Source: Selaginella moellendorffii (Eukaryota; Plantae; Lycopodiophyta). From it: DNA of 64,000 nt. Numbering within the stretch: the first letter of the stretch is position 1; the number at the start of each line of letters is the position of its first letter. Of this stretch, positions 2,627 to 27,409 are shown in pieces. The stretch is from NCBI RefSeq assembly GCF_000143415.4, contig NW_003314332.1, positions 248,001-312,000 of the forward strand, given 5' to 3'. Under the pieces are notes generated by a model, which did no database searches, was not told where the DNA came from, and saw nothing but the letters and a program-made list of their open reading frames with translations. A program made the translations under genes and the position numbers.

Positions 2627-3286
2627 AAACTCTATTTCGTTAAAGTGGGATTTATTCAGTAAAATAGGACTAGGTACAAATTTTCACGTATTTGAAAATA
2701 ACGTGAAATTATATGTTTTTTGTCTAGGGGCTAGACATGTCTGGGGCATGGTGACTAGCGCGGTGACTTTGTGTCTAGACTGAGTCCATCTGGTTGTATA
2801 ATAAATCTCATTGTCAAGGTGAACAAGCCGAATATGAAGCTAAAGAAGAGCGATGGCATGCGCGCACACACTATTTGTTTGTTCATTGAGCGTGTGGTGA
2901 GCTTTCCAAGATGAACGTCATTCCTATTAGCCAGACATATAACTTAATGGTGAGAACATTTAGATATTATTCAATGTTATCTTTTTCTAACGAATCTAAT
3001 TGTGAAGGTGTAGCAAGAGGCATTGCTAGTCTGGAGAAGTCATTTAACTCATTTGACCCTTAGTGTATTTTCATGAAACTAAATAACATTCATATTATTA
3101 AGGAATTTCTCTAGTACTTTTTTTTTACGACATAGAGGCTTGCATTTCTTTCAAAGGTGATTTAGTAAAAGGCCTGAGGGCACATGCCATTCTATTTCTC
3201 AGACCGGTATTAAGATATACTAGTGCAAAGGGAAAAAGGTATTTGGTGATCAAGTAAATGGCATGAGGGCACACGCCATTATAAGC

Positions 3287-3544
3287 CTAAGCGCTAGTGG
3301 ACACCTCCTTTTTGGTACTCTCAGCGGTACTATCATCCTTCTCCGGATCAGTTGTTTTGCTTTGGATTGTTGTCTTTGACGTTACTGGGGCATTCTCAAT
3401 AGTTGTTAATGTTGCCGTTTGTTCAGAAAAATGATCACCTGGAGTATAGTACGGGGAGTTTGGAAGACTTATATATTCTACATCTTCTCCTATCTCCTTC
3501 TCCGTCTCCTTTTCTGCCTCACTTACAGATTTTGTGCTTGCCAT
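3287..3544 (-). CDS. Small orphan ORF of element A (SLPxSPYYTPG family)
   Basis: MASTKSVSE..YISLPNSPYYTPG..NAPVTSKTTIQSK..ESTKK; homologous to the ORF at 28833-29147 in element B. Confidence 0.45.
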   Translation of the reverse strand: MASTKSVSEAEKETEKEIGEDVEYISLPNSPYYTPGDHFSEQTATLTTIENAPVTSKTTIQSKTTDPEKDDSTAESTKKEVSTSA

Positions 3545-4029
3545 GAGAACGCTCTTCACCCTAAAATATGGAGTTCGTTGTGTTATAAAAGGAAACCAAC
3601 ACACATGCTGCAAGGGAATGATGGTACATAAAGCACGTAAGCCCACAATATGGGTTTATGTGCCATTAATATGGGCCACACGCCATATTATTAGATTTAT
3701 GCACGTGTGATTGGTAAATGCATATGTCACATCATCTTTGTTTTACCTCACACACTATATCAGGCATAATGAACCATATCACATGTGCGCACATGCTATA
3801 TATATGGAGAAGTATTATGCAAGGATAGAAAAATTCAATGCATGATTGTGGAGAGCAATGGCATGAAGCCACATGCTAAATAACATTTTAGAGAAAGAAT
3901 TAAAATAGAAACATGCAAACAGTATTGAGTGGACCAAGACTTAGAAGTGCACAATTGAATGAGGTATTTCTAATAAATATTTCACTCACCTCATATAGGA
4001 ATGGCTACCACTCTATAATGGTGTATCAC

Positions 4030-7000
4030 TTAATGAATCTCACCTTGAACCCGGGTTATGAATGCTCTTGCTGCATCTCTTGCATGGTCTGGCAAGGTGA
4101 TGGTGGCACTCTGCTTCCGCATCCAACCATGCACAACATTATCCACCGACATGCTAATGCTGGGATCCCTTGGATTCAGCACCCATCTCTTTTCTAGACA
4201 ATCCTTCGTATATCCGGAACTTGGCTTGAACCACTCCACAGTTACATTGAAGGAGTTAGTTTCTGTGTCCTCCTCTGCATCAGTGATGCAGCGCCCCACC
4301 CATATCATTTGTTTTTTATTACTGGGTCTGACAAGCACAACCATTCCTTTGCAGACCTATACTGGATTGAATGCTGAATCCGACTTCTTATTCCTCGGCC
4401 CACAATAGTGATCCTCAACATCGTTATCTGTCACTGCATTTCCAGAGGACATTATTCCGCTACTATCTGGTGCTCTGGGTTCTGGCCAAAAGGACTCTTC
4501 CAATTCTTCATATACAACCGGCCCATTTTGGATAGCAGATATAATCTTCTCCCAGTATTCGAGCAAAGGCTTGCACCTCTTAAAATAGGATTCTCCACCA
4601 AACACCAACCCCCTCTTCCAGAAGGCAATATGCTATCTAATCCCGGCCACTATACTTTCCTGGTCTTTGAGTCCATCCGGGTGCATCGGCCATGGGGAAC
4701 CCTGAGGAATCATAGGTTCCCCAGTTATGGGATCTCTCTTGAAGAGTTCAATGCCGTCCACTGGCAGCCACACTATGTCCCATTCTCTCATCTTGTACCT
4801 CATCACTGGAGCACCGTCACGCATGCTGAAATGAAACTGAAGAGGCTTGGAGTGGCCAATCAGCGTTTCGGATCCATCCCTGATGTAGCCTCTTACAAAC
4901 CCCTTAAAGTCTGGAACCTCTGTCACAAGTGCAGCTTCAACAGTGCCTTTGATGCAATTTTGGAATTCATCGTAGAGATGTGGGAGGGTGAGGATATTGG
5001 ATCGCCAAAGGGACTCTGCCAGGTGACTGAACATGGCATCGACGTCTTCATGAGTGTGCCCAACCATGAGAAAGCCAAGTGTAACCGTTTCTAATATGCC
5101 TTTGGTAACAAGCATCGCCAAGTACGCGAAGACGTACATGTTTTTGTTCTCACTACCAGCATTGTCTGTTTGGAGCAGAAGATGGGGTGGAAGGCCACAT
5201 CGGCCGCAAGAACTTCCTTGAGATTCTGCTTCGTTTGGATGAGGCTGTGCATTCACCGGGCGACCACCCTCGTCGGAATGGCATGAGGCCTCACGTGATA
5301 ACCCTACAATCTGACAGCCAACATATTCACTGGGATGGCATGGGGCCCCACGCGATACTGCAAGCCTTTGCTCCTCCTCCAGCTGAACCCTGTATGGGGT
5401 TCGATCGACAAGGGCCTTATGCAAGGGTTGGCCGTTCAGCTCAGTCTGCGCACTTTGCAGAGACCTTAAGTGTTTTGCTAGGGACGCAATCATTATGTTT
5501 GCACCCCCGCCACCCCATAGAGGTACAAAGAAGTTCCCATAGTTCTGGGCACCATGCCCATGAGCGATTATGCCAAACAGAGACATAGGCAGCTGCATGG
5601 ATGAAGAGATTGCCTTGGGGGTAGGATTGAGTCGAGGTAAGCACGTCTTTTTCTGGTCCATTTTGTCGTGGATGATGCAGAGGTAAGAGTCAGGTCTCTC
5701 CATGGAGAGAATCCTGTTATGATAATATGCAGTCCTACAGCTTCTCTGCTCGATGTTGTGGTCGAGCCGCCTTCTAACCAACGTCTCTCGCTCTTGAGCG
5801 CTGCAAGAATTCTTCGACAAAGCCATTTTGATAGCAGTGCACTCGTCACACTTTGAAAAGCTGGAGTACTTTCCTATACTCACATCCCTGAACCTGTTGC
5901 TCCACAATCTACTAAATCTAGATTGGCTCAGCTTCCTGTAGCCATTACTCTGGAGTTCCCGATTCACATCTTCCAATATGGCCCCCTTGGTATACATGGA
6001 AGGGAGAACTCGTTGGGTGTCTCGTGTTCCATCTTCCAAGAGGCGGGTTTTATGTGGTTGCTGCTCGCTACATGTCTCGACAAACCTCTTGAAGATTGCC
6101 TCTCCATATACAACATGACCCCTGGTTTTGTGCGTACCGTCGTTCCCATGGACTGCCTGTTGAACCCTTTGTTCCTCGAACTCAGTTTTGATTCTGTAGA
6201 ATGTGGTTCGAGGGACTCCATAAATGATTCTCCATGCCTTCATGCAGACCAAACCCCTCTGGAAGACCATGCCCCCCACCTGATGTTCTGAAGCATCAAC
6301 AGATGACCGTAATGCCTCATACACAAAATTGCGAGCTGCCTTCCAGGACAATGTCTTGTATCTTGCTCTCTCCTCTTCAATAGCATCCCAATCAGCATGT
6401 TGACAGCACCTCCTCTTGCAACAAGCAACTGTCGAGACCATTTGAACCTCCATCGCCATTTTCTGCCTTTTCGGTTCGTTGCTCAAATCCCTTTGGCTGC
6501 GCTTTAGGAAGGTGTATTTTCTTTTCCCATGAAGAGATGTTCTATCATCAGTTATAGTGGTGTTTGATTGTGAATCCTTCACATTCTCAAACCCTAAGTG
6601 CCTCAATTTCCACCGCACAATGCTTCCAATAGTCAGACTGTTTTCTTCTGTGTCAACAACCTCTAAAATCGCAACTCCAATATCATCCCAGCCCAATTCT
6701 TGATTAGCAACCGCATCTCTTGGATCGACAACTGTGGCTAAGCCCTCAGCTACCACCTCCCCCTCGGGGTTGTTTAGAAACACCTTTGCCTGAATCCATG
6801 TAGCACGGTTCTTAAGATCCACGGAGGGAACATGCGTCGCACTTGCGCTGTCCCCAACATCTGCTTTCTTCTGAAGATTTTTCAAAGCAACAACAACATT
6901 TACCCCGACAACCATCTCTCCTTGTTCAATAGCGACCACATTCCTATCGAAGACAGTCTCTACTGACACAGCAGCATTGCCTTCCCCAAGCCTTTGACAG

Positions 7001-7098
7001 TGTATAACAAAGTTCCGATCCATAGACACAAGGGTCCCTTTTGCAACTCTCTTCCCACCATTCAAAATGTAAACCTTTTCCCCAACCCTGAAGGCCAT
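4030..7098 (-). pseudogene. Sola-like DDD transposase of about 1022 aa with two premature TAG stops; N-terminal tandem TNP1/En/Spm-like domains
   Basis: ORFs 4633-7098, 4357-4608 and 4030-4344 share one frame; catalytic-type motifs IIHDKMDQ, LLLQTDNAGSENKN and FLMVGHTHEDVDAMFS; Cys clusters CCKRRCC and KCDEC; N-terminal VAKGTL..H..LG..V.V repeated as VAEGL..LGWDDIGV. Confidence 0.8.
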
Positions 7099-7439
7099 TC
7101 TGAAAGTGCAGAAAAGAAGTTAAGACCATACAAAAAATGATTGGAGAATGGCCTAAATCATAACATACCAAACAACCTCAATAGCATGAGGCCACATGCC
7201 ATTATTCAAACATGCTATTGACACCCACGTGAAATTTCGCATTCACAAAATTGGCATGAGGCCTCATGCCATCTTGATATACACACAGCTATAGGCAAGT
7301 AAAAACATACATGACAATACACTAGCTATGAAGGGCCCAAGATGGCATGTGGCCTCATGCCATTTCTAAATGTGGTCCTAAGCCATTCCATGGTGAACAT
7401 ACTAGGAAGCACAAGTGCCGAATATAAAGAGGAAGTGGT

Positions 7440-7585
7440 AGCCACACCAAAGACAGTGCCACTCGCAACACCGCAACTACTCGTAGCGTCGCTCGCAACA
7501 CCGCAACTACTCGTAGTGCCGCTCGCACAAACTGCCACTCGCATAAACTGCCGCTCGCAATGGTGCTCGCAATGCCGCAACCGCT
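7440..7585. repeat. CpG-rich short tandem repeats (GCTCGCAACACCGCAACTACTCGTAG-like) upstream of the transposase
   Basis: Direct repeats visible in the sequence. Confidence 0.7.
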
Positions 7586-8386
7586 TGTAGACGCATAAAC
7601 CACAGCTCACAACGCCGCTTACACAAGCAGCGCTCACTGCGCTCAGCGGAACCAAGAACACGGCGCACAAAAATGATAGACCTAGGAATGAGTTCGAGAA
7701 TTCAAAAATAACACACGCTTGAACGTCACATCAAATCCTCTGACAAACCAAATCTTATGATTCCTCTGACAAATTTCAAACTGAGTAGCTTCTAGACTTT
7801 GCTGTCGGAGGTTGAACTTTGTCGCATCATGTCCTTGCCTCGATCCAGCTGTGCCATGTCAGTGATTCGAACTTTGCCATGCTGTGTCAGCGATCCGCGC
7901 CAAGATTATTCGCCGTGTAAAGGAATAATTATGCTGTGTGTGTACGTCCATTTATGGCAATATAAGGCCACACGCCATTCAAAGAATAATGCTAGTCGAG
8001 CATTTTTTGGTGCATTTTTGGGTTCAAAATTGCATGAGCCCACACGCTATAAAGTTTACCTGTACCAAAAATAGAAACAGCTTTATTTACTTGGGAATTT
8101 AAGTGGTTGAGGCATTTTTAAACTTACAAACACATGCCCTACTTACATTCCTTTGGTTGCTTAAAATTCAAAAATATTATAAACCTTTTTTTTTGCATTT
8201 TCAATGTTTTCAATTATGGTTTTTGATTTTCGCAGAACCAGCCTAGTAATCTATTTGCATCCCGTCATGTTTATAACTAGCTTTCGTTTGCCCCCTTCGC
8301 TAGCCTGAGATACATCTGCTCGGCATCTGCCTCTTACAGTAGTTGCCCAGAAAGGGCATCTTTCTTCACGCAGCATTTGCCACATG

Positions 8387-8412
8387 TTTAGGGTTTAGGG
8401 TTTAGGGTTTAG
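8387..8412 (+). repeat. Plant telomere-type repeat (TTTAGGG)3+TTTAG, telo-box-like, inside element A
   Basis: tttagggtttagggtttagggtttag; present in reverse in copy 2 at about 63742-63768. Confidence 0.85.
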
Positions 8413-9278
8413 CAATTCAATAGCTTGATAAACATGCAAATACAGAACTTGATGCAAAATCCTTTGATATGTCACAATGCCCCTAGGACCATAAACACAT
8501 TTCAATAGAGAGGGTCCTTTCATTTCATAACTCCTTACGTAGATCTTGGTGAAACCAGAGTTAGTGAAGTTAGTTTCTTGTGATCTTGCATCTGATTGTG
8601 ATGTCCCTTTGCAGTGTCGATAGAAAGGTCAATGCACACCAAACTGTAAAATCTTGGAGCAAAATAACGGTCAGATCTATGGCAAATGCCCCTGAAACAT
8701 TGTAAGGCTCGTGTGGTCTCATGTGGTGTCCGATCGAGATGCTTCTTTGTAGGGTCATCAAGAAAGACATTGTATACCATTCTGTAAAATCTAGTTGCGA
8801 TCTAACGGTTGGATCTCCAGAAAACTCAAAAAAAATCACGTGTCAGAATATTCTAGGAATATACTCCTATGTGCCCCTGAAAATGGCATGCGGCCCCACG
8901 CCATTCAAGAGATAACACCAGATGACGCCGAGCATTTTTTGGTGCATTTTTTGGGATTTGTATACCATTCTTTATTTAGCTGAACATCTGGCATTTTTGG
9001 AAATACAAGATGCTTTGGAATATCCAATCATGCATGGTATAAATATAGCGAGGGTATTAAATGATATCCCAATCATGATCTTTCTTTTGGATTTCGCGTG
9101 CATGCAGTCCGAGGAATGATGACATTGCGGATTTCTTTTGGATTTCACGTGCATGCATGCGCGCGGCGATCCAGAAATTAATGGTGGCGCCCAAGTCCGA
9201 GGAATGATGACGTGGCAGGATTACCAACCGTCATGACATTTCGCGCGTGTGAGGTTAGGTTTTGCATTTTGCTTTGTA

Positions 9279-9490
9279 CTCGCGCTCGCACACTCGCGCT
9301 CGCATCGTGCTCCCACACTCGCGCTCGCATCGCGCTCCCACACTCGCGCTTGCATCGTGCTCCCACTCGCGATCACGCTCACATTCGCGCTCATCTACCT
9401 TCTCTACAGGTTTCTCGTGTGCATCGGCCTCCACTCGCGCTTGCATCACACTCGCGCTCGCATCGCGCTCGTGTGCATCGGCGTCCACTT
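9279..9490. repeat. CpG-rich ~25-bp tandem repeat (CACACTCGCGCTCGCATCGTGCTCC) upstream of the cargo gene
   Basis: Multiple imperfect copies; partly deleted in copy 2. Confidence 0.8.
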
Positions 9491-9889
9491 CAAGACACAC
9501 CCAGTTTGTAACTTCGCCGCCAACTCCGCCGCCCACTCTGCCACCCACACGCAGCCCACTTGGCGTCCCAGGAGATTTCAGCGCCACTCTCCAACTGTAT
9601 GTGGCAAAGTAGCCTTGCTGCTAAGATCCGCTGCACACACAGTGCACATTCGCCAGCGAGTCCGGCCTCGATTGTCACGCCTCCATTCGGCTTCAAATGG
9701 TAAGTCTTTTAGGCCAAGTAGAAAATGGCATGAGGCCACATTCCATTCAGTAGCAACATTGGCATGCACCGATTGGGCTCTCGAGTGCAGTCCGGTTACA
9801 GATGGCGTGTAGCCTCACGCCATCTTAGGATGCAGTCTCAAGACATCTGATGCAGTGGTGAATGGCGTGTGGCCTTACGTTATTTCCAG

Positions 9890-12800
9890 CTGCTAGCTTT
9901 TCATCTGTCAGCTCTAATTGTTGTGGATTTCTGAACAGGCGAGGAATTGCGTTCTTCTTCCAGCCACTGTCAATGTGGATGCAGAGAAGGGGGAGGAGCT
10001 CACCAGTTGGACTTTCGGGATGGAAGGCGAGGATCTGAGGCTGTACAACACAGATGGTGGGAGAAAAGAATGCATGGGGATCCTCATCCAAGTGACAGAC
10101 ACTCCATGCAGTTCCATGCAAGAATATGGACTGGCACTTGTGGTAGAGACAACGTCTGCCTTCAAGATCCACCTTGTACATCCTAGCGGCTTCCCGGAGG
10201 GGGGCAGCGGCTATGAGGAATTCCTAGAGGGAGCTAGGGAGAGGTTGTCTAGGAGGCCCACAATTTCAAAGACGTTGCGGGTCTATGAAGATCACATGGA
10301 ATCCACGGACCTCACCTACGGCGATGTTCAAAAACTATATTTCAACATTGAGCCGTTGAGAGTGCCTCCAGTTCGTGAAGCGAAGGGGAAGGGGGTCGAT
10401 CTGGAAACTACCCCGAAGCAGAAAAGGGTGGTCAAGCTCAAGCCGACGTCCGACTCTCCTGCTCCAAAAAAGAAGCTACTCGGTGATGCTATTGGCTCGG
10501 GTTCGAACACTACACCCACCAAAAAGAAGAGCCGCAAAGAGCAGAACGAGCAAGAAGAGGCAGCAAAAATTGTCGCAGATAATAGTACTTGTTACTATTC
10601 CAACAAAGTATATACAATCGACGTGAGCCGTATCGACATCCAAAGCAAATACAACCACAGGCTAGTATCTGATGAGTGGGTGGAGAAACTGAAGCAGAAG
10701 ATGCTGGCAAGTCCAGTAACACCCGACATCGCAGACGTGATCCCCTACTACCGAACAATGAAGGGCGAGACGAGGTTTCTAGACTTGATCAATAGGAAGG
10801 TGTTGGACGATCAGAACATCCGGTTCTATGCCGTCTCCGGGCAGCATTCTAGCTTGGCGATGCAAGAGATAGTTGTGGATATTATGGTGGGCGAGGAGGT
10901 GAAGAAAGTCTTCAAGACAAGAGTTGTCCGCCTGATAAAAGGCAACTCGCCCCTCCGATCTATCATATACATCTCCCACGCGCAGAATGTCAAGCAAGAA
11001 ACATGCTACAAATCGGGTCTGCACGAGACATTGGTACGAACACGGAAGCTCTGGGTTCAACTGAAGAAGCCACAAAAACTAGGACAAGGACATGCACTAG
11101 CAACTAGCGCCTGGCAGGTAAGCCTCGTTGCATGTGGCATAGCATGTGGCCTCACGCCATTTCCATTGCAGGAATTCTCGAGTTTTCTCTCGAAAACACT
11201 GGGGGTCAATGACACACTCAGCATCCATAACATTCTACTCGCGACAAAAGTTGTTTTTGACAAATGAGTAGATGTGTTGAGGAGGTACCATGACGGGGAG
11301 TTACTAAACTCAATAGGTGTGGAGGACGGCCGGAAGCCCAATGATTTGAAGCTCAACGCCTTGCGTTTCTTGCGGTCTCTAGACGACGACGACCTTCTGA
11401 CAGTGGCTAATGCTCTTCTACGTGGTGAAGTAGTCTTCAACAAGACCAAAATGACTCCCGGCCATATTGTGACATACGAGGACTTGTGCACGACTCTGAG
11501 AGCTTGTGCGCTATTGAAGGATTGGATCTTCGAGCAAGTGGCCGTGGAGAGGGTGAGCATCGACACCACGCAAGAGATGATGGAAGCGCTGGATTTTTCA
11601 AATGAAGACATCGACGAGTACGTGAAGGGGGCCCCCAAGTTCATCGATCTGCTGCGGGATGCCACGAAAAGTAAAGCTGAGAAGTTGGATCAGTATCCAA
11701 ATTTCATTAAGAGGGATGTCGACCGCCGGCTTTAGAAACAGCTCGACCCCACAGTAGAGGCCTATCGAGAACTTTACCGGGTATACGTGAATTTGGATGA
11801 GGATCAAAGGTGGAGGAGCATCGTTTCCCGCGGAGATGAGCAGGTCAAGAACATCTTTTGTGTGATGGACTTCACAAACGAGGAGATCACTCATGCAGAC
11901 GAAGTCATCTCCATCATTGACTTAATGGTGGGACTTGCGGAGGTGGAATCTTCAGTCCACTATATGATCTACGACTCCGAATCCTATCACAAGTTCTGGA
12001 AGGCCTTGAATGAGGTGAAGGCTTGGTTGAAAGGCAAGGAGATGCGGGAGATCCATGGGATAATGGCTAAGAAGAAGATACCGACGAATGTCCGCATCTT
12101 CACACTCGCCCTTGTTATTAGTCCTGCAGCAGAGTGGGACTGGAGTGACTTCCCAGCTTCGTTCGACAAGGCCGATCGAATTGATCTGAGGGAGGTCAAT
12201 TTACCCGTGCCTGAGGAACTGAAGACGGCTATGGAGCTTTCGAATCCAAAGAAAGCTCCAGGTGCAGCATGGGAAATGCTCAGCTGGGTCTTCAACGCAA
12301 TAGCGGGTGGGTCACCTGCTTCTGACTCCAAGGGCAAATGCGTTGTCGAGTACAACTGCGGCAGACTATTCTTTCGAGCCGCACTACTCAAGGGTGTCCC
12401 GTGTGTTGCGGTGACAAACTCCATTGAAGAGGTGACTTCAATGGAGCATATAATTACAGTTGCCAAAGAAAAACAGTATCTTCTCTGCGAACCTGGTGAG
12501 TACGCACTTTAAGTTTAAATGTTATCTCACAAGCTCTGTATGCAGGAGCGTGGCCACCCCCAGATGCTGAAACGGCGTTAACAGCTACTGTTGAAGATAC
12601 CCATGTTGGGCCGAGCTCACAACCTGCACAAGGTAAGGTCACGTGAGGACTCGCGCCATTTTGATTATAGATCGTTGTGAATATTCAGACACGAGGACTG
12701 AAAAGCGCACTAGTGGCGCGTCGAAGAAGGACAAACAGACAAGCAATAGGAAAAAAGGAGGTACAAATTATATTTGCAATGGCGTGTGGTCTCATGCCAT

Positions 12801-15294
12801 TCCTTGCAGGAGACACTTCTTCAAAGGCAAAACAGGCAAGCACCAGCCAAGCTCAAACTGACAGTGGTCATAAAAAGCGAAAGCACGTTGGACAGTCGTC
12901 GGGATCGATTCGAAAAGGAAGAAGGGCAACGAAAAGATGATAGGTAATGCCTCGTGGTTATGGCGTGTGTGCTCATGCCATTCATTGCAGATCAAGGGCT
13001 GAGTGAAAGCAGCCAGTCACCACCTCCTGACTCAGATTCCTATGGCGGACTCCCCTTCCCCAATCTCAATGGAGAGGTACAATGGATGAGGGATGCTTTT
13101 CAAGTCAGGGCCACGTTTTTCTCATCTCGTCGTCTTCGAAGGGTGTAAGAACGTGCAGAAACCATGTTAAGACAGTGGGGTGAGGATACGGTCCTAGGTC
13201 ACGCACTAAAACAGGCTATGGATGTCTTGTATTTTGACATGGAGACTCGGCCAGATGATTTTCCCAAGATGGTCCTGGAAGAACAAGCCATCCAGCCTGA
13301 GCAGCCTATGGAAGAAATGCAGGAGGGGGATGAGAAGCCAGAGAAAGATAATGAGTAGGAAGAGCAGAAGGACGAAGAAGAGGACAAAGAAGAGGAGGAC
13401 GAAGAGGACTTGGATGGTCCTCACAATGGTGACGATCACAATAACGACGACGACGATGATGACGACGATGGCCAGCCTGAGGTGGCCAAAGAGCAGCGGA
13501 GGAAGGTCATACAAGACAAACCATCAGGTAAATAATAGTACATCCATTCCTAACCTTTTACCATTTCTAACATTGTCTATGTAGGTCGCAGAGCAAATGG
13601 TAAGTAGAGATTATTCAGTTGAATTTACAAACTCTAGCCTTTAGTGTCAAGGAAGGATAGTGCCAAGCAAGGGTCGAAACGTATGTCCAATCTTTCAGAA
13701 TCAGCAGTGCGCCCAAGTGATATCGGTCCTAGTTCCTCAATAGCAGTTGATGGTAAATACAGTATAGTCGATTCAATGTGCTAATGAGTTTGTTTTTAGT
13801 AGCACAGGAGGATACCATCTCAATCGAAGGGAGATATTTGGACATGCATATGGATCTGCCAGTGGACTCTACTTGCCTGCAAGAGTCATCAGAGCTGGTG
13901 GAGGCTACTATCCATATCAACGCCAAGCAAGCTGACCATGCTCCACTTGATGCTGCCCATACCACTGAGTCAATCTTGTCCACGTATCCAACTGACGGTG
14001 ACCAGGCGCCATTGGACCCGCATGAGGCCGCCCCAGCCACCGAGCCGGTCATATCCTCATTTCCAACGGACTCAACGTGTGCCCAATCGTCTGACTACGC
14101 ACCGTTGGAACCTCCCTACACCGCCCCTGCTGCCTGTTCGGTCATGTTCACTTTGCCAACGGAGGCACCAGCTGAAATGGCATGTGATCACACGCCATCG
14201 GAACCACCCCATGCCACTGTTGAGCCAGTTGTACCAGAGTCTACAGTTGAAATGGCATGTGCCCACATGCCATCGGATGCGATTGACCCCACATTGCAGA
14301 GGAGAGTATTTCCGCCCTTCACGTTTCCTCGACCAAAACCCTCTCAACGACCATCGGGAGCACCATTCGCTAATATTATAGATGGTAAAATTGACTTGCA
14401 CCATTTTTTATGCTGACGCATTTCATTTCAGAGTCACGGCGAAGGTACTGTATCGTTTTTTATCTGAACGGTGTCCTTTTCTCCCATGAGCGTGGCTCGT
14501 CCTCGAATGTCACTGCACCCTCCAAAGCCTGCGGTCGCAAGTTGGTCAAAAGAGACAAATTCACATTAATCACACGGGAGAAACTGCGGGATCTAATAAT
14601 GACCATGCGACACTTAAAACAGAGGGCCGGGTTCAATTTGCAATTGGGAGTTTGGACATCCATGATGCGCCACAATGCATTAACGTTGCTACAGATGATG
14701 CACGATCAGACGCGAGTAATATTACCATTTGACTTTCTCCTAACGCAGGAGGATTGCTTGACTATGGTCCATGTGAGGGGTAGCAAGCCCATCTTCGTCA
14801 AGCCAGAGGCTGTAGTGATGAACCGGACTACTAGGTCAAGTGAAATCCTCATCATCGATGACTCGCCGATTAAAACTGCAGTGAACACGCACACATATGC
14901 AGTGCACCCCATCTCTTGCAGTATGGAAACTAGGGAGAAGAAACCATATGTTCTGGGGGACCTTGCAAAACGGCTTAGAGCGATGGTGATAGAGAACCAG
15001 CCAGTCCAGGAGGTGGCTGCAGAAATCAACCAAATGGCAGATGGAATGGTATATCAGAAGCCATTTGATCGGACAGACACCAGTCATCATTTATGGCATG
15101 TATATTGTCTAGCCAAGCACTATCCGCATCTCCATAATCTGCTCAACCGGATGGGTTGTTCGACCACTAAACATGAGCATGGACGTATTAGAGAAGAGAT
15201 GGCATTACTATTGGGTTTAAATCCTGATAGTGTGGAGAGTGATGAAATTCCAAGATTATTGTATAGGCGTTGGAGGCAAAAAATAACAGTCTGA
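9890..15294 (+). pseudogene. Element A multi-exon cargo gene: ParB/Srx-like domain, degenerate amino-MTase fold, acidic linker, FCP1/NIF HAD phosphatase-like domain (about 1650 aa when spliced; true start uncertain)
   Basis: ParB-like VYTIDVSRIDI..NHRLVSDEWVEKLK..FYAVSGQHSSLA; MTase-like tail NPKKAP..MLSWVF..GKCVVEYNCG..FRAALLKGVPCVAV; HAD motifs IVF(D)LNGVL, LGVWTS, ILIIDDSPIK; GT-AG introns 11118-11171, 12496-12545, 12633-12670, 12761-12809, 12944-12990, 13528-13584, 13600-13644, 13753-13799 and 14385-14431 join in frame; copy-1 stops at 11265, 11733, 13146 and 13356 are sense codons in copy 2. Confidence 0.75.
14432..15294 (+). CDS. FCP1/NIF-like HAD phosphatase domain (last exon of the cargo gene)
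   Basis: YCIVFYLNGVL (FDLNG in copy 2), VWTSMMRHNA, LTQEDC, IFVKP and IIDDSPIK match the plant DLNGxL FCP1-homology family. Confidence 0.8.
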
Positions 15295-15736
15295 GATGGC
15301 ATGTATTTACTTAAAAATGTAACTTATTATGGCATGGGGTTCCATGCCATTGTATTAATATTAAAAGACAATTCTTTGAGAGGATTTGCATTATACTAGA
15401 AGTGTTACAACATGTTATTGGAAGTCTACGAAGTTGTTTTATTAATAAGGGGAAAGTAAGGATTGAATGGGGACTTGGGCTCCACCTAGACTCGGAGCAA
15501 CTGAGCCAATATTAAAAGGATGGAAAGAAATTGGACGACGATGACAAGGAGAAGAGAGAGGTGAAGCAGTGGCAGGGGGAGGAGAAGTGATTGAGTAGAC
15601 ATTTCCTTGTTTAAAATAAAATGGCATGTGCCTCAATGCAGTTGAATTTTGTTATATTTATATACTATATAAAGGTTTGGAAATCTTATTTTACAAGTGG
15701 GATAATGACAATTCCCACTTTAACGAAATAGAGCTT

Positions 15737-16915
15737 TTTTACTCTCTTTATCATACAGTTGGTGTTCTCTTAGTTTCTCAAACACTTTCGTCAAGTGTTC
15801 GGTATGCTCCTCTAGCATTTTGCTATAGATCAGAATGTCATCAATATAGATGACCACAAAGTGATCCAGATAGGGTACAAAAATGTGGTTCATCAATGCC
15901 GAAAATGTTGCTGGCTCATTGCAAACCCCAAAGGGCATCACTAGAAACTCAAAGCTCCCATACCTTGTTTGACAGGTTGTCTTCTCGACATCTTCCTCTA
16001 CTACCCTGAGCTGGTAGTATCCTGACCTTAGGTCAATCCTCAAGAAGTATTTTTCTTTTCCCAACCTATCGAACAGGTCCTCAAACCTTGGCAAAAGGTA
16101 TTTGTTCTTCTTTGTATACTTGTTGAGCAACCGGTAGTCTATGCACATGCGCATAGATCCATCTTTCTTTTTCACAAATAATACCGACGCCCTATATGGT
16201 GACTTACTCAACCTAACATACCCTTTGTCCACCAACTCCTCTAGTTGGCGCTCGAGCTCCTCAAGTTCTTTTTTGTTCAAACGATAGGGGGGACGAACCA
16301 TCGCCTCAGCACCCTCGACCAACTCAATTTTATATTCTATCGATCATGTGGGGGGCAACCCCGCCGGTAGCTCCTCTGGCATGGTATCCTGGAATTGGTC
16401 TAACACCTGCTGGATCACTAAAGGTACTTTTTCCATTCCCATCTTTTTGTCACTCTTCACTGAGAGTAAGCACAAAAATGCTGCCTTGGTTCCTTTAGTG
16501 AGTTGTCCTCTCATGGACACTAAGTTTAGGCAGGAATGTTTGGCCTTGCATTGCCCTACATTTAGATCTTGGGCCTCCACCCTGGATCTTCTTCCTTGGG
16601 CATTCGCTAATACCACAAGGTTCCTACCTTGTCTATGCAGGGCTACCACGAACCGATTGAACCAATCCATCCCGAAGATTACATCAAATCCCACTATATC
16701 TAACACGGTGAAATCCATATCTACTTTCCATGTCCCTACTTCAACTCTCGCTTGTCAAAGTACTTCATTGGTGCTTTGGCTGCCTTGCACAAACTCTATA
16801 GTCCTTGGTTCGCCTAGCCACTGCACTATTAGTCCGGCTTGCCGGACTATGTCTGCAGCCACAAAATTATCTGAAGCACCCGTGTCAATAAGGATCTTAA
16901 CAAAGCTACCTTCGA
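15737..16915 (-). mobile_element. Gypsy pol middle part (aspartic protease and RT) between elements A and B
   Basis: KILIDTGASDNFV protease motif; RT motifs [39 protein letters not shown]. Confidence 0.95.
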
Positions 16916-17593
16916 GGGGCGCGGAGTTGAAGAGTTGAGCTCACGAGTTGAGCTCAATTTTCAATTGTAATTTAGTACAAATATTATAAATTTTAAAATT
17001 TTAAGGTTATGGCGAACCTAATAATTTAATAACTCTCTATATATTATATAGATAAAAATGTTCTAAAGAACACTTTTTGTTCTAATAATTTAAATATTTA
17101 CTACATGCAATGATAGGGACATTTGTTAGAACATAAAATAAAATGTTTGCAAAAAGAGTATTCTTGTCACTTCTTTAAATTTGTACTCTATCCTTTCTAG
17201 CTAGTAAATGTTAGGTTTGTCAGAATTAAAAAATTATTAAATTTGAAATAAGATTATATGTAAAGCCATATAACCGTTTGAAAGGAAAAAAAATAACTGT
17301 TGATGTAAGCTTATTGCATATAAAAGAAAGACTTGGTTCTTTGTAGAATACATTCTTGAGGGGTTTGTCGTAGCATACTATCTAGAATTTATAGATCTTC
17401 ATTCACATTCTCATTCGAAAAAAGGAAAATACACCCACAAATGTCTATGGGTTTTAGTGCTGGTAATTTTAACTCTCACAATCTTTCTTCCTAGGGTTCA
17501 AGGGCTAGGAGATGCAATAACTATCCCATTGCACAGCATAACCAAATCACACAAGAGAATGAAAGAGAGGATAGTGATGATAGTGATCATGAG

Positions 17594-17893
17594 TTGGAGA
17601 TAAATGCAATGACAGAGGGTGCAACAAATTGGGTGAAAAAGAATGCCCTCTTACTTGTTTTAGAAAAGTGCAATTCTGCCACTTTCAAGAAGTGTCCCAT
17701 ATGTTTTCTAGCGTCTGGTGGAAACAATGGCAATGATCAGTATGATGGTATATATGCTCTTGCGACACATTGCAACATCACGCATCTGAAAGACTACCAT
17801 GAAATCTTTTTTGAGATGGTAAAGATAGAAATGGAGACACACGAGTACTATGGGCAGTATTGCGAGAAGAACACTCGGAAGCATATAAAATGA
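17594..17893 (+). CDS. Small zinc-finger protein, zf-XS (SGS3)-like
   Basis: KKCPIC..QYDGIYALATHCNITHLKDYHEIFFE resembles the SGS3 zinc finger pattern CPxC..YxGLxxLxTH..H. Confidence 0.55.
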   Translation: MEINAMTEGATNWVKKNALLLVLEKCNSATFKKCPICFLASGGNNGNDQYDGIYALATHCNITHLKDYHEIFFEMVKIEMETHEYYGQYCEKNTRKHIK

Positions 17894-17984
17894 AAAGTGA
17901 AATGAAAAAGCACATTTTTATTAATTATATCAAGTATAATAAGTTTTATTGATAGAGAATAAACATCGATAGTGTTGGAGAAAT

Positions 17985-20900
17985 CTAATTAGCTCCAAAA
18001 GTTTTCTGCAACTCAGCAATAGTAAGGCTTGCTTGGTATATATGAATATCCACTTTAGGATCCTGGTGCAAGATGTTGATGAAGATATAGTACATATGCT
18101 TGCAAGGAGCATATGCCTTCCCATGTTCCTCACGCTTCGTAAAGTCTAGATATGTGCAAGAAGGAAAGTCGTGAATGGGAATTGTGTACTCTCCACCTTC
18201 TGTTTTGACTGTGTACTCCTTTGCAGGCACAGTGATGTACTTCGTGGAGAGAATCTCACACTCAAGTGTTTGAGCCAAGTTTATTTTACCTTGCTTCTGC
18301 TTGGAGATGGTACCAATAAATTTAACTGCCTTACCTTTTCGTGTTGGCCTCCTGTGCATCTCTGTAGGAATAGTCCTGCTCTTGTCACTCATGTCTCCAA
18401 CTCTCCTCTCAAGATTAAAACCAGATTTCTCAAGGTTTTCAATCTCATCCGAGGTGAGTGCGACCCCATTAGCAACCGGCCATTCTTTAGGTACTGCATC
18501 AGGTTTAGTCACTATAGTGTCTTCAAGCTGCTTCGTATGGTTGGCATCGGTGTTGCAACAATATAGCCAACACCATCTTGAAAATCCTACTTGCTTTCGT
18601 TCCCCATAGAAATATGGGGCTGGAACAGAAGCAGATTTTTCACCACGAATCCAAGCCCAACACTTGCCCCTCGGAAGCATCCCCACACACCTTACATTCG
18701 ATTTTGCTGGCACGCGTCGGATTGCCCATTGCTTCGGCTCTACGCTACAGTAAGCAATTTCAACCTGTTGCAATGCACTCTCTTCATCAGCCACTTGAGG
18801 TGGCTCGGTCCGAGAGTGGTGTCTTGGAGCAGAATGGTACTCGACATCAGGCCTGTGAGAGCTTTTTGCTTCAAGGTCCATACCAACATCTTCCCCAACA
18901 AAGGAAAAACGACACTTTGAGCGGACAGTCTTCATATCACCAATAGAAGCTCGGGGAGTGTACTCCATAGATGTGCCACGGACCACTTCCTCAACTGCAA
19001 TTGCCACTATTCGGGCGGGTGGAGTTAATTTTCTCTTCATCCTATCATGTAACATCTCAATAGAAGGCCCTGTTCCCATGTATCTTCCTTCCCCGAATGC
19101 CAGTGCTTTTGAAGATTGCTCTATAGCACATATCAAATCTAATAGACAGGCTTCGTATAGACTCATCTTCCCTTTCCCTGCCTCAGAGGAACGCCAACTC
19201 CAATGCTTACTTTCAGAGAGATTCACAGTTGGGGTGTATGCGAGGTCCTCAAGTGGTTGATCCTAATGGAAAAGGCAATATTAAAAGGTAATAAAAGGAG
19301 AAGAAAAAATATAAACCAACCTGAAAAGAGTGATGTCCCCATTGGAACATCCTAACTTCCCACCATCCTAACCATGACTCAAGTTGTGGTAAGCAACTTA
19401 CGTCTGTATGGCCATCTTCACACCACCACATTCGGATCTCATTTGCTTTTGCCTCATGCTCTTCTTCAGAAGGTGCAATTTGCCATTCTTTGCACAACTC
19501 CTTAAATATTGATTGAAACTTTGGTTTGATAAGGTGGCAGTGCTGGTTTAGGCTTTGAGCCCAATGGAACTCACAAATCCTCTCACGACCTTCCAATGGT
19601 TGACCATTCCCAAAAACTGCTCGGATACCATTCTAGTTTGCACCAGCCCCATCTGCCATGAAACCATGAAAGTTTGCAGGTTTACCAGTCTGCTTTAGGA
19701 CAATATCAGAGAGGGACTTCCAAAATATTTCCTATGCTGTCTAGTCTTGTACTTTAAACTCTGCTGTCGCAATTGTTAAGTTACAACGTAGCCTATGAAA
19801 ACATAAATATTATAACAATTTCAATATAATGAGAATAAAAATTACCTTGGATCATACACATGAGCTCCCATGGTTGTCCAACCGGATACACGCTCCATAT
19901 GGTCAAAATGTACCCATGCATTTGCAAGGTCACTGGACCCAAACATGTCCATTCGGGAGACAAGATCTATGCCAGAGCCAGGGCCCATGGTAGACATTTT
20001 GAAGATGAAGGGGCGCTCTTGCTCATTCACAACTTAGTTTGGAAACAAACTTCCGTGGATGAACTCGTATGGACAGGTCTGTTTCAATTCAAGGATGGAG
20101 TCAATTTTTGATTGCAACTTCCCCTCTTGAGATTCACACATCCAAGATTTTATCCTAAACAATATAATGTAAAAAAAAATTATTATTATAACGTATGAAA
20201 AATAACGGATGTACCTCCTTAGGCTAGTAGCAGGTTGTACTCTTTGTAGTAAGTCCCGCAAGCTAGCCTCATTTAGTTGAGTCTTTTGGCAACCTAGATT
20301 GAGTAAAGTATTTGCGATAAAATCCTTGAGGACGGTCTTTTGAACATGCTTCGGAGTTGCAGATGAGTTTCTCATAGTCTCTTCCTGTACAACATCTTTG
20401 AAACGGTTGAGAGAACTCCTTTGTATCCCTTCCTGCATTGGATGCATATATGTGCTAACATGCACTGCAGCTCTTCTAGCCACTCCATCCCATGGAAGAA
20501 AGTAGTACATCTTGGCCTCGCAGATAGCATGACATAAAGGAGCATTTTTGCAGAATCGACATTTGAATCCAATAGCAATGGTGTCACAGGCTAGAGGATT
20601 GACTGCAGACCCTTCGAAAAATATAGAGTTTCTAGAGCGGTCTCGATTGCATGCTTCATCCACACAATCTAAATGCCCGCCACAATGAACTATAGACACT
20701 GTGCCTTCAAAATGGTGGACATCCTGCTTGGTTTCCATCCCCTTCCGTTTGGAACCTGTGCTGCTGACAAGAGGTGGTAGCTCGAAGAAAATGTTGCCAT
20801 TGTAGGAGGATGGAAGCTCACTCACAGGCCTATACAAAAACAAGTTCACGTCGATTGAGAGGTGTGAAAACTGGAAAGCATTGCTAACGGCTTTGAATAT

Positions 20901-21047
20901 TGCTGAAGTTGGAGTTGGAGTTGGAGCTGGAGCTAGTGAATTTTGCGCCGACACTAGCATGACATCTCCACTTGAACTAGAAGAGGACGAGTGGATAACG
21001 ACTGACTCTTGCTTCACATTCACTTTCGTTGGAGCGCATTTTGGCAT
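17985..21047 (-). pseudogene. MULE-type DDE transposase with GCM/WRKY-like N-terminal zinc domain and C-terminal SWIM finger; introns and stops present
   Basis: CGGHLDCVDEAC..CRFC..C..H; WVHFDH; GFMADGAGAN; CEFHWAQS (CxxH); NLSESKH; SWIM-like SCTYLDF..PCKHMYY. Confidence 0.85.
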
Positions 21048-22204
21048 TTTGACTGGAGATCCGAACACTCGAATCTCCTTCAACTTGGAATTTTGTAAAT
21101 CCCATTGTTGTCCACCCTCACCCACACTAGAAAGAAGAAACTCCAAGTATGCAACTATACCGGTGTCGTTGCGGATCACAGCCTCTAAAGAAATAGAGCT
21201 AAGATGAAGATCAAAACGCCGACATAAAAAACTTTCAGAAACAATACTTTGAGAAAATGAAAGAGGTGGGTGATCTCGAAAATGAAGAAGAAACCTCTCC
21301 ATCCTTCTCAATAGGTTTTGGATTTCTCTCTCTTTATGCTACTTGTAAAAATCTATAGTGAAACATAATTGAAATTTAAATAGAGTAATAAGAAGACAAC
21401 GTACAAAATGAATTTAAATTCTATAACAAATTTAACATGTGTAAGTGTGATAGTAATAATATTACTATCATCAATTATGATGTCTGATGCATGTATACAC
21501 ATAGATCCAAGGAAAGATTTTCAGCACGTGAAGTTTGATAGTTAATAATGATACAAGTAATGACATTCTGTTATAACATGTCAAACCAAGAGATCCAATC
21601 TAACTATCAGCACGTGTGATATGTCAAGTTGTCAAATTTTAAGTGGTAGATGATAATAAATCTTGTCAAATCTTATTCTTCAATGACAGATTTGATTCGT
21701 AGTACAACTCAAGTTTTATCTATAATTGTGAACACTGCTCAATGACATTTAAAGCACGTGCCTATTGTTTAGGATCTAATACAACACAAAATAAATTTCT
21801 GGATGAGGATTCATCCATTCATAGATGGATATGGTATAACATATTTTAATGTGCCTTATTTATACTCTTTAAAGTTCTTGTAACGATTCCAAAATATGTA
21901 CAAAATATTGATGAGAATGCATCCTTTCTAGATAATTTGTAAAATATAATATCATATCCCTAATAACAGAAATGTTGATAGGTGCTAGTTATACCATCAT
22001 TAAAATATACAAAATAAAGAAGCATAATTTACATATAATAATAATGATAAGATAAAATAAGATCAAAGATATTGTGATGGTTGAGATTTAGGTTATTCGG
22101 AATGAACGGCCAGGATTAGAGATTGGTTAGGGTTAGGGCAGCTGTCAGGATTAGGGTTATGGTAGCCGCCAAGATTAGGTTACTGTTCGCATCGTGAGTG
22201 GAGC

Positions 22205-22460
22205 ACGCGAGAGATCGAGAGATTGAGCGCGAAGGAGATCGAGGGATTGAGCGCGAAGGAGATCGAGGGATTGAGCACGAAGGAGATCGAGGGATTGAGC
22301 GTGCAAGAGATCGAGAGATTGAGCGCATGAGCGGGAGAGATTGAGCGCGCGAGCGGGAGAGATTGAGCACGCGAGCGGGAGAGATTGAGCGTGCGAGCCG
22401 GAGAGATTGAGTGCACGAGCAGGAGAGATTGAGTGCGCGAGCGGGAGAGATTGAGCACAC
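22205..22460. repeat. 22-24 bp tandem repeats (GAGATTGAGCGCGCGAGCGGGA and GAGGGATTGAGCGCGAAGGAGATC)
   Basis: About 11 imperfect copies visible. Confidence 0.9.
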
Positions 22461-22580
22461 AAGAAATCTAGAAATCAAGGGAGGAAAGATGCCACCAAGG
22501 GTGAGTTTCGATTTGATTGCTTCCACTTCCATTTTTTGAGTCCATTGCTTCCCTTTTTTTTTCTTGATTGCTTCTTTGCT

Positions 22581-23648
22581 GGCCGAGCTCGAGCTCGGGC
22601 TGGCCACCTCGGGCACTTTGGCTGCCCAGGGGGCCGAGGTTATTCAAATAACCTCGGCCCCTTAGCGAGCAAAACTGCCTGAGCTCAAGCTCGGGCCAGC
22701 CACCTCGGGCAGTTTTGCTTGCCGAGGGGCTGAGGTTATTTGAATAACCTCGGCCCCTCGGAGAGCAAAACTGCCCGAGCTCAAACTCGGGCCGGCCACC
22801 TCGGGAAGTTTTGCTTGCCGAGGGGCCAAGGTTATTCAAATAACCTCGGCCCCTCGGCAAGCAAAACTGCTCAAGCTTGAGCTCCGGCCGGCCACCTTGG
22901 GCACTTTGGCTGCCCAGGGGGCCCAGGTTATTCAAATAACGTCAGCCCCTCGGCAAGCAAAACTGCCCGAGCTCGAGCTCGGGCTGGCCACCTCGGGCAC
23001 TTTGGCTGCCCAAAGGGCCGAGGTTATTCAAATAACCTTGGCCCCTCGGCAAGCAAAACTGCTCAAGCTCGAGCTCGGGCTGGCCACCTCGGGCACTTTG
23101 GCTGCCCAGGGGGCCGAGGTTATTCAAATAACCTTAGCCCCTCGGCAAGCAAAACTGCCCGAGCTCGAGCTCAGGCCGGCCACCTCAGGCAGTTTTGCTT
23201 GTCGAGGGGCCGAGGTTATTCAAATAACCTCGGCCCCTCGGCGAGCAAAACTGCCCGAGGTCGAGCTCGGGCCGGCCACCTCGGGCAGATTTGCTTGCCG
23301 AGGGGCCGAGGTTATTTAAATAACCTCGACGCCTCGGCAAGCAAAACTGCTCAAGCTCGAGCTCGGGCCGGCCACCTTGGGCACTTTGGCTGCCCAGGGG
23401 GCCAAGGTTATTCAAATAACATTGGCCCCTCGGCAAGCAAAACTGCCCGAGCTCAAGCTCGGGCCGGCCACCTCGGGCACTTTGGCTGCCCAGGGGGCCA
23501 AGGTTATTCAAATAACCTCAGCCCCTCGGCAAGCAAAACTGCCCGAGCTTGAGCTCGGGCCGGCCACCTCGGGCACTTTGGCTGCCCAGGGGGCCGAGGT
23601 TATTTGAATAACCTCGGCCCCCTGGGCAACCAATGTGCCCGAGGTGGA
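22581..23648. repeat. 96-bp tandem array (about 11 units) built from palindromes
   Basis: GCCACCTC recurs every 96 bp; each unit contains CCGAGGTTATT-NN-AATAACCTCGG and GCCCGAGCTCGAGCTCGGGC. Confidence 0.95.
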
Positions 23649-23828
23649 GTCTAGGCCCACTTGATTTTTTTTTTCTCTTTGACTGTTTGAATTTCTCATT
23701 ATCTTTATTTAGTTTGACTAATAAAACTTTTTCTCTTGCAGAAAAGGAAAATTGTAACACATAAAAAGGTGGTTGGAGCCAAGACATGAGAAGTTCAATT
23801 TGGCACTAACGACAACATCACAATCGAC

Positions 23829-26800: not shown

Positions 26801-27370
26801 ATGATGTGGACCTATCATGCCTTTTGCAGAAACACACATGATGGGTTTCGTGGTAGCGAACATGCAGCATGTGTTTTGCCTGAGTACGACAGTTCCACTA
26901 ACATCATACCCAACCTTGTGGATGAGCAAATCCGCAATACATTTCCAAGGTACCGATTCCAAACTCCATCAGCAATGCAAGTCTTGCTTGAGCTCTATTG
27001 CCCACCAAATGGTGTTGTGATTGATTGCACAGCAGGTAGCGGTTTTATGGTGGAGGCAGCACGTGACTCTGGTAGGTCGGTGTTTGCTATTGAAGAACAT
27101 CATTTCTTCAAATGCCGGCTCAGAGGATTTCGTGAGTTGCCTTCAACCTCAAGGAGGTAAATTATGTTTATTAAAATTTCAATATATATTTCATTCTATT
27201 TTATAGATCACAGTCACCTGGAGCTCCTAGAATTGGAGGCTTTGGAAGTCTCCCTAACTATGCAGAAGCCATGGCTCAACATATGCAAACTGAATCTTCC
27301 CCACAATACCAATATAGGAGGAAGTATAAAAGAAATCATTATATTGATGATGAGGTAGAAGAAAGTTAAT
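23829..27370 (+). pseudogene. Element B multi-exon cargo gene: Pro-rich N-terminus, ParB/Srx domain, acidic linker, beta-class N6A/N4C DNA methyltransferase-like domain
   Basis: EIPLCHL..FQIIDGNHRYGA (GxxRxxA, about 24576-24605); VADFILFDFPNG (about 26460-26493, DPPY-equivalent position); YRFQTPSAMQVLLELYCPPNGVVIDCTAGSGFMVEAARDSGRSVFAIE (motif X/I); many short GT-AG introns; a few in-frame stops. Confidence 0.78.
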
Positions 27371-27409
27371 TGCATCCTTACATAAAATGGAAAGCTTGTT
27401 ATATATTAG

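Follow-up and report, generated by a model that had tools for sequence, protein, structure and literature searches.

We analysed a 64,000-nt stretch of the Selaginella moellendorffii genome (contig NW_003314332.1, positions 248,001 to 312,000; hereafter the window). In this window a complete 13.1-kb DNA transposon with terminal inverted repeats (TIRs), element A, carries a DUF7869-type transposase gene, a divergent cargo gene for a protein with a ParB/sulfiredoxin (ParB/Srx) fold, and dispersed palindromes of 22–24 bp. The palindrome is real and, within the window, exclusive to element A and its inverted partial copy (copy 2). It avoids conserved coding sequence, and it turns over from lineage to lineage among related elements. 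Judged by sequence comparison, this is a lineage-specific cis-motif system, nearest in logic to VANC/VANDAL and KorB/OB. From these observations we infer protein binding, the binder and its effect: the palindromes would be binding sites private to the element, read by a protein that the element itself encodes. The cargo protein is the leading candidate for this reader, an assignment that we favour but hold tentatively. The first-pass annotation of this DNA had proposed a self-recognition system in which a ParB-like protein loads at the palindromes and spreads along the element. The motif, the ParB fold and the co-variation of motif and protein family bear out part of this proposal; a clamp dependent on cytidine triphosphate (CTP) is not indicated, and the methyltransferase-like fold could not be verified.

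The motif ATGGCRTG-N6-CAYGCCAT has 15 exact matches in the window (9 in element A and 6 in copy 2); if up to 2 mismatches are allowed the number rises to 29, and with up to 3 to 34. Dinucleotide-preserving shuffles gave expected numbers of 0.00 and 0.08. All 34 matches fall at 2853–15642 or 56732–63269, i.e. in element A or copy 2, and none lies in the 43.5 kb of the window outside both copies, other transposable elements included. The density of half-sites is 1.1–1.6 per kb inside the copies and 0.05 per kb in the other 43.5 kb, a difference of 20–30 times. The earlier statement that the palindrome is private to the element is thus correct for the window. The conserved unit is a 22–24-bp perfect palindrome with one CpG per arm, and its symmetrised consensus, taken from a position matrix of 22 sites of element A, is aAATGGCATGtGGCCaCATGCCATTt. 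In the same 22 sites the information content is limited to the palindrome and one flanking A/T on each side, and farther flanks carry none. What is conserved is therefore the site and not a longer repeat, and we rejected an origin from a miniature inverted-repeat transposable element (MITE) or another longer repeat. The R and Y positions are CpG-to-TpG/CpA decay of a predicted ancestral ATGGCGTG...CACGCCAT.

All 22 palindrome positions of the first-pass annotation were found again, one of them (12638) as a degenerate copy. At the left end of element A, the site at 2853–2874 (2 mismatches) is subterminal and the site at 3169–3190 (2 mismatches) lies downstream of the transposase gene. They are followed by sites at 3258–3279 (exact), 3778–3799 (3 mismatches, absent from the earlier list) and 3858–3879 (2 mismatches). 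Two sites, 5278–5299 (2 mismatches) and 5335–5356 (1 mismatch), share a non-conserved, ORF-compatible linker of the transposase open reading frame (ORF), which is either an intron or tolerated coding sequence. The site at 7181–7202 (1 mismatch) lies just upstream of the transposase ATG, and those at 7251–7272 (1 mismatch), 7342–7363 (exact), 8029–8050 (2 mismatches) and 8883–8904 (exact) are intergenic. The predicted intron 1 of the cargo gene contains three, at 9725–9746 (1 mismatch), 9802–9823 (exact) and 9862–9883 (3 mismatches). The site at 11139–11160 (1 mismatch) is inside a 54-nt mini-intron of the same gene. Directly after a GTAAG donor lies the degenerate palindrome 12638–12659, whose counterpart in copy 2, at 59729, scores 3 mismatches. 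The exact sites 12779–12800 and 12960–12981 occupy candidate GT-AG mini-introns of 49 nt (12761–12809) and 47 nt (12944–12990), each 9 nt upstream of TTGCAG. Two further exact sites, 14177–14198 and 14252–14273, share a non-conserved, ORF-compatible linker upstream of the NIF exon, the latter 27 nt upstream of a TTGCAG acceptor-like site. The last two are found at 15329–15350 (exact), 35 nt past the cargo stop codon, and at 15621–15642 (3 mismatches) in the right subterminal region. Besides these full sites, element A has half-sites at 3679 and 7971.

None of the ~23 sites falls in a homology-supported coding block (the conserved regions of the transposase, the ParB exon, the middle/methyltransferase-like exon and the NIF exon), though these blocks make up roughly half of element A. 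Four sites (5278, 5335, 14177 and 14252) are in ORF-compatible, non-conserved linkers and the rest are intergenic, intronic, subterminal or in untranslated regions (UTRs). By its splice signals, at least one site is in a GT-AG mini-intron of 47–54 nt, and three probably are.

The cargo gene (ParB fold, methyltransferase-like remnant, NIF-like domain) occupies 9697–15294 on the forward strand, divergent from the transposase gene. Its splicing is inferred from sequence signals and reading frames. Directly after the ATG at 9697, splice signals and frame continuity indicate intron 1 (GTAAGT...ACAG, 9700–9938, 239 nt). The next exon (9939–11117, 393 codons) encodes the ParB/Srx-fold domain with the core FYAVSGQHSS. 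It is separated by the 54-nt mini-intron (11118–11171, CAG|GTAAGC...TTGCAG|G) from a second homology-supported exon (11172–12495). At the same W(K/Q)|V position, homologues either end or read straight on. The second exon encodes a conserved middle domain and the methyltransferase-like remnant (VVEYNCG(R/G)LFFRAALL), with jackhmmer matches to the related loci L001, L002, L003 and L004. A C-terminal NIF/FCP1-like domain (Pfam PF03031), with F(Y/D)LNGV replacing DxDxT, follows at 14410–15294. Across 12.5–14.3 kb the frames do not chain into a full exon model in element A, and sites 14177 and 14252 may or may not be coding. The cargo gene of element A has in-frame stops at 11265–11267 (TGA) and 11733–11735 (TAG). 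At these positions copy 2 reads W and Q within an intact ORF of 863 amino acids, and a contig from another copy has C at 11733, giving CAG instead of TAG. Where other copies differ from element A they mostly do so by T>C or A>G, which is consistent with deamination of methylated cytosines in element A.

An AlphaFold (AF2) model of the N-terminal cargo domain, built with the family alignment, reached a predicted local distance difference test (pLDDT) score of 81. The 46 best Foldseek matches in the PDB are all ParB-fold proteins (ParB, Noc, KorB, PadC, sulfiredoxin, SbnI and relatives). A VIA-align superposition with Myxococcus xanthus ParB (PDB-entry 7bnk) resulted in a Z-score of 11.7 and a root-mean-square deviation (rmsd) of 1.9 Å over 94 residues. 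Together, these results support the ParB/Srx fold that had been suggested from the sequence. Among AlphaFold-DB clusters the matches are uncharacterised proteins of eukaryotes, and several carry the annotation N4/N6 DNA methylase. No Pfam match was obtained for the N-terminal half even at E ≤ 10, nor a relevant NCBIfam match; a PDB sequence search with the N-terminal part returned no match, and a word-indexed search with the ParB exon no homologue. A phmmer search against 1.8 billion representatives yielded 18 weak relatives (best E-value 4e-10), among them proteins of Selaginella and of the liverwort Calypogeia fissa. In 15 family members and in L009 the loop equivalent to GxxRxxA reads (S/D/N)GQH(S/T/L), with G-Q-H invariant and no arginine. 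With an invariant SGQHS in place of GxxRxxA and no matching ParB profile, there is no indication of a CTP-dependent clamp that loads and spreads.

The ParB domain is followed by a conserved helical domain modelled at a pLDDT of 40–60. A loose superposition of 129 residues on the N-terminal and helix-turn-helix (HTH) domains of ParB has an rmsd of 6.4 Å. The model of the full cargo protein (residues 190–852, 663 residues) reached a pLDDT of 55 and for this reason was not used for fold searches. In the methyltransferase (MTase)-like region, motif I is degenerate (VVEYNCG(G/R)LF, i.e. EYNCGG, here; (I/V)LDFFSG(E/G), i.e. DFFSGG, in orthologues). The catalytic motif IV, (D/N/S)PP(Y/F), was not found in this region of the translations of the window, L001, L003 and L009. 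Pfam PF01555 matched the L001 orthologue with an E-value of 0.0016 and 18.9 bits, below the cut-off of 26.7, and hhalign of the region to the MTase of a second element in the window (see below) gave an E-value of 0.07. Matches by Atlas language-model features were all to N6_N4_Mtase (0.74–0.75), which we take as a lead only, and a PDB profile search returned only low-complexity noise. The methyltransferase-like fold of the first-pass annotation was not verified, and by its sequence this part of the protein appears to be only a degenerate remnant. The NIF domain was found with an E-value of 7.8e-6 and 26.1 bits in copy 2 (cut-off 21.8), 5.3e-4 in element A and 29.2 bits in the L001 orthologue. 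Its catalytic DxDx(T/V) is not kept: the second Asp is replaced by Asn in copy 2 (FDLNGV), element A (FYLNGV) and L001 (LDLNKI). A distant homologue, P0015, keeps DLDD. Elsewhere in Selaginella moellendorffii (GL377575.1; L002, 10001–11425), a protein of 451 amino acids is homologous to the middle/MTase-like region of the cargo. It lies among host genes (ArfGAP, VQ) with no recurrent palindromes and may therefore be a domesticated or relic copy.

Relatives of the element were obtained through homologues of the cargo protein or the transposase and come from the liverwort and several environmental contigs. Six relative loci each have their own palindrome, with 0 expected by shuffling. L001 from Calypogeia carries 13 sites of GCCTCGAGA-N3-TCTCGAGGC, extendable to 27 bp, all between and after cargo exons. 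L003 has 26 sites of CRCAACGC-N-GCGTTGYG upstream of and inside the cargo gene, and L005 a single 27-bp palindrome immediately after the ParB exon. In L008, the closest full-length relative by its transposase (37% identical, intronless), 10 sites of CCTATGGCC-N4-GGCCATAGG lie in the 1.6 kb upstream of the transposase gene. L009 has 10 sites of GGTATCGTCG-N3-CGACGATACC over 9.3 kb and combines a DUF7869 transposase with a divergent ParB-like gene (INGQHS; hidden Markov model E-value 2e-6). The motif of L006 and L007, GTTATCGTCG-N3-CGACGATAAC, forms tandem arrays 0.5–2 kb upstream of the transposase; their transposases are 67% identical to that of L009 and the core motif is common to all three. 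In five lineages (the window, L001, L003, L005 and L009) a palindrome is found in the orthologous intron right after the ParB exon. The co-variation of motif and protein family that the first-pass annotation had put up for comparison is thus seen in related elements, down to an orthologous intron that carries a different palindrome in each. Linkage of the cargo gene to a DUF7869 transposase is seen both in the window and in L009, two distant lineages with transposases that are 28–45% identical over aligned segments. If the element encodes its own sequence-specific reader, a multi-copy, dyad-symmetric site is expected to turn over from lineage to lineage; neither a host factor nor a neutral repeat leads to this expectation. 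L009 also has a separate NIF-domain gene fragment at 20740–21455 (reverse strand), ~8 kb downstream of the transposase and adjacent to an rve integrase ORF, which may belong to the end of the cargo gene of a neighbouring element.

Based on these results we propose the following mechanism. The palindromes would act in cis as dyad-symmetric sites private to the transposon lineage and seeded throughout its non-coding DNA, from the divergent promoter region and the introns to the UTRs and the subterminal regions. They would be read by a dimer of a protein that the element encodes, so that the element would be recognisable as 'self' wherever it is inserted. The cargo protein would descend from a phage-type fusion of ParB and an N6/N4-methyltransferase. 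It would have kept the ParB/Srx fold, lost the canonical nucleotide-binding and methyltransferase motifs, and gained the NIF/FCP1-like domain with its DxN variant of the active site. Binding would likely lead to local control of the element's chromatin or transcription, either as anti-silencing, like VANC, or as global autoregulation, like KorB. With a CpG in each half-site, binding could also sense or oppose cytosine methylation.

The identity of the reader is less certain than the existence of the sites. For the cargo protein we count its ParB fold, the unrelated TIRs, the sites deep in genes, the linkage of cargo and transposase genes, and the parallel of a second ParB-carrying element in the window, described below. 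Several results weigh against it. The ParB-type nucleotide-switch arginines are missing, SGQHS being in their place, and no DNA-binding HTH was demonstrable, as the pLDDT stays below 60 beyond the ParB domain. Both copies decay neutrally: they differ by 2.6% in coding and by 2.6% in non-coding DNA, and the palindrome arms by 5.2%. No transcription of element A was seen over 9600–15400 in three RNA-seq libraries (three raw runs, of each of which about 12% was read). L006 and L007 keep their palindrome arrays with no ParB-like ORF within 10 kb, and the palindrome of L008 has the ATGGC..GCCAT outer core of the window motif, which means that the motif follows the transposase no less closely than it follows the cargo. 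The DUF7869 transposase might accordingly read the palindromes through its N-terminal CxxC/HTH region, using internal and subterminal sites for synapsis or autoregulation. The sites would then resemble the AAACGG motifs of Ac or the TnpA motifs of En/Spm, and the ParB-fold cargo would do something else. The arrays of L006 and L007 upstream of the transposase, and the 10 sites of L008 upstream of an intronless transposase gene, with their shared core, speak for this reading, and multi-copy subterminal binding motifs are usual in plant DNA transposons. Yet the TIRs share nothing with the palindrome, so that a transposase reading the TIRs would need a second specificity, and sites spread over 13 kb, deep in the introns of both genes, are unusual for a transposase. 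L006 and L007 may be deletion derivatives of a cargo-bearing element such as L009 served in trans, and the L008 contig ends 1.6 kb upstream of the transposase, where a cargo gene could still follow. Taken together, the cargo protein is the tentatively preferred reader, the transposase a doubtful but serious one, and all other readings combined are unlikely.

Among these others, the palindromes might act as RNA, forming hairpins of 8–11 bp in introns and UTRs that aid the splicing of the unusually short introns or feed or evade small-RNA pathways. GT-AG mini-introns of 47–54 nt hold at least one of the sites, and probably three, 9–11 nt ahead of the acceptor. A yUnAy-like CTCAY is present in the right arm at branch-point distance, and the folding of intact palindromes is better than that of shuffled sequences (z = -2.5 and -1.8). 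Against this, many sites are intergenic or in promoters, in tandem arrays upstream of genes (L003, L006) or beside TIRs. CpG decay affects the two arms in all four combinations and no compensation is seen, and in the best-supported intron the site has decayed and lost its folding (z = +0.45). A loop-free perfect palindrome also suits a dimeric DNA site better than a hairpin, and we regard a role as RNA as very improbable. Hardly more probable is a reading that involves either a host factor or none. The palindromes would then be captured sites of host transcription factors or products of neutral internal duplication or insertion (an 'intron cassette' or micro-MITE). The sequence GTAA(T)GCCTCGT precedes the palindrome in two mini-introns, which hints at duplication of a cassette, and the GGCC spacer and CACG core presumably resemble elements common in plant promoters. 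The different palindromes of five related lineages would be left unexplained by a conserved host factor, however, and the uninformative flanks and the 43.5 kb without a copy outside the element, other transposons included, also argue against this reading.

If the cargo protein is the reader, a more far-reaching view, which we consider speculative and rather unlikely as a whole, would make the system a eukaryotic counterpart of KorB and its operators. A clade of DUF7869 transposons, found in streptophytes and in eukaryotes from environmental assemblies, would then have domesticated a phage-type ParB-methyltransferase as a self-reader, catalytically rewired and sequence-specific. This reader would dimerise on 10–30 private palindromes, many of them in purpose-built mini-introns. 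Its DxN-variant FCP1/NIF-like domain would engage the C-terminal domain of RNA polymerase II or the chromatin machinery, and the element's two genes would stay active or be protected from CpG methylation. Reader and palindrome would evolve together, with the result that every lineage would activate only itself.

Element A (2627–15736) is inserted in the pol gene of a Ty3/gypsy element, and its borders were correctly placed by the first-pass annotation. The left TIR, AAACTCTATTTCGTTAAAGTGGGA (2627–2650, forward strand), bears no resemblance to the palindrome, and the right TIR (15713–15736, reverse strand; reverse complement AAGCTCTATTTCGTTAAAGTGGGA) matches it at 23 of 24 positions. Target site duplications (TSDs) of TTTT lie at 2623–2626 and 15737–15740, and TTTT also flanks the visible end of copy 2. 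The flanking ORFs at 15720–16322 and 1958–2401, both on the reverse strand, encode a reverse transcriptase (RT; YIDD motif) and an RNase H-like protein. Removal of element A plus one TTTT restores the Ty3/gypsy RT reading frame ...KESKSDFAQQEVKFLGH. The transposase gene (4030–7098, reverse strand) consists of a main ORF (4633–7098) and a C-terminal part in ORFs 4357–4608 and 4030–4344. The protein contains the Pfam DUF7869 core (5e-41) and is 34–38% identical over its full length to the environmental and NCBI proteins P0030–P0035. With this core, TIRs and a 4-bp TSD the element has the traits of a DUF7869-type, possibly Sola-like DNA transposon. An ORF of 119 amino acids downstream of the transposase (3287–3646, reverse strand) has no Pfam match, and a telomere-like repeat of plant type, (TTTAGGG)x3, lies in the intergenic region at 8386–8412 and is kept in copy 2.

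Copy 2 (56634–64000, reverse strand) corresponds to 8155–15740 of element A, is cut by the window end, and contains 12 palindromes and the intact cargo ORF. It is 96–98% identical to element A. The differences in the palindrome arms are nearly all transitions and mostly at CpG positions. Purifying selection on the palindromes between the copies was rejected, because CpG decay makes the arms change faster than the rest (5.2% vs 2.6%), which is the pattern expected of dead, methylated copies. Within the transcriptome search the sole read match in 9600–15400 is a spurious one of 33 nt: ~100–190 reads per library match no more than 9601–9633, with A>C at 9624, and run into unrelated sequence on either side. 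The 5' region of the element has this segment in common with an abundant cellular RNA, and this is no evidence of transcription of the element. Contigs of run X1 are unspliced and resemble DNA or another copy. Both copies look silent and neutrally decaying and are probably methylated, so that function is to be inferred from the family and not from these copies.

A second element with a ParB-like cargo, an unrelated Mutator-like element (MULE), is present at 16800–28500. It has transposase-like ORFs at 17985–21311 (reverse strand), a ParB-like ORF at 23829–24740 and an MTase C-terminus at 26801–27160. Its cargo is more canonically ParB-like (FQIIDGNHRYGAW; DGNHR) and is combined with N6_N4_Mtase (DCTAGSG; Pfam 4e-5). 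Between its divergent genes, at 22483–23742, lies a tandem array of 11 copies of 96 bp with the nested palindromes AGGTTATT-N2-AATAACCT and GCCCGAG-N6-CTCGGGC. BLASTP of the element A cargo against the ParB and MTase ORFs of the MULE found no similarity, and the MULE is possibly an independent instance of a ParB cargo combined with palindromes. Farther along the window, long arrays with a 12-nt period (TCGGACTCCATC and TCGGTCTCGGTC types) at 31439–31700 and 53345–53900, GC-rich segments ~22 kb apart, probably are a low-complexity coding repeat of another retroelement.

VANC21 of the Arabidopsis transposon VANDAL21 acts in sequence-specific anti-silencing, and its motif binding and the resulting hypomethylation have been demonstrated (PMC5735166; PMC10398659). 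Like a VANDAL, element A is a DNA transposon with an accessory, non-transposase protein and with short motifs concentrated in its own non-coding DNA, and in both cases the motif differs between related families and turns over with the lineage. VANC, however, lacks a ParB fold, and its motif, YAGTATTAY, is not palindromic; VANDALs are MULEs, whereas the transposase of element A is DUF7869-type; and the binding and hypomethylation demonstrated for VANC are putative for element A. ParB, KorB and Noc read palindromes of 13–16 bp as dimers (KorB: PMC11790492). The systems KorB-OB of plasmid RK2, ParB-parS and Noc-NBS resemble element A in that a ParB-fold protein of a mobile element is combined with about a dozen dispersed palindromic operators (PMC11790492), similar in site length and dyad symmetry. 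These proteins are CTP-dependent sliding clamps with GxxRxxA, an HTH and a C-terminal dimerisation domain; the cargo of element A, in contrast, lacks the arginines and a ParB profile match, and its sites are in a eukaryotic host and partly intronic. With the ParB_N/N6_N4 DNA methyltransferase fusions surveyed in phages and prophages (PMC12704722; PMC4738411) it would share the domain order, a ParB fold followed by a beta-class MTase with motif I at the C-terminus, and the MULE of the window keeps the canonical DGNHR and DCTAGSG. The cargo of element A differs from these fusions in its degenerate motif I (EYNCGG), the absence of motif IV and the added NIF/FCP1-like domain. Neither survey (PMC12704722; PMC4738411) describes eukaryotic, transposon-borne versions with cognate palindromes.

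We found no prior description in the literature on DUF7869, on ParB with transposons and on Sola, and a full-text search returned no paper on the DUF7869 transposon group. TnpA of En/Spm is an element-encoded, non-catalytic protein that binds multiple 12-bp motifs, often in inverted pairs, and affects methylation and transcription of its element. The putative reader of element A would likewise be a non-catalytic protein of the element with multiple copies of its motif, but the TnpA motifs are subterminal only and the protein families are unrelated. To our knowledge, few transposon-encoded systems for the recognition of self-DNA have been described, VANC of Arabidopsis being the main example beside TnpA of maize. 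If our reading is correct, element A would represent a second, independently evolved self-recognition system, built on a bacterial or phage ParB fold and long palindromes and spread across non-seed plants and other eukaryotes. Protein and motif would offer a clean case of co-evolution within an arms race against silencing. The system would further show the ParB fold used on DNA in a eukaryote and provide a set of orthogonal site/reader pairs with sites of 17–27 bp. The sites inside introns of 47–54 nt bear on the gain of introns by transposon genes. Should the transposase prove to be the reader, lineage-specific palindromes spread over the whole element would still be a new trait that defines the poorly described DUF7869 group.

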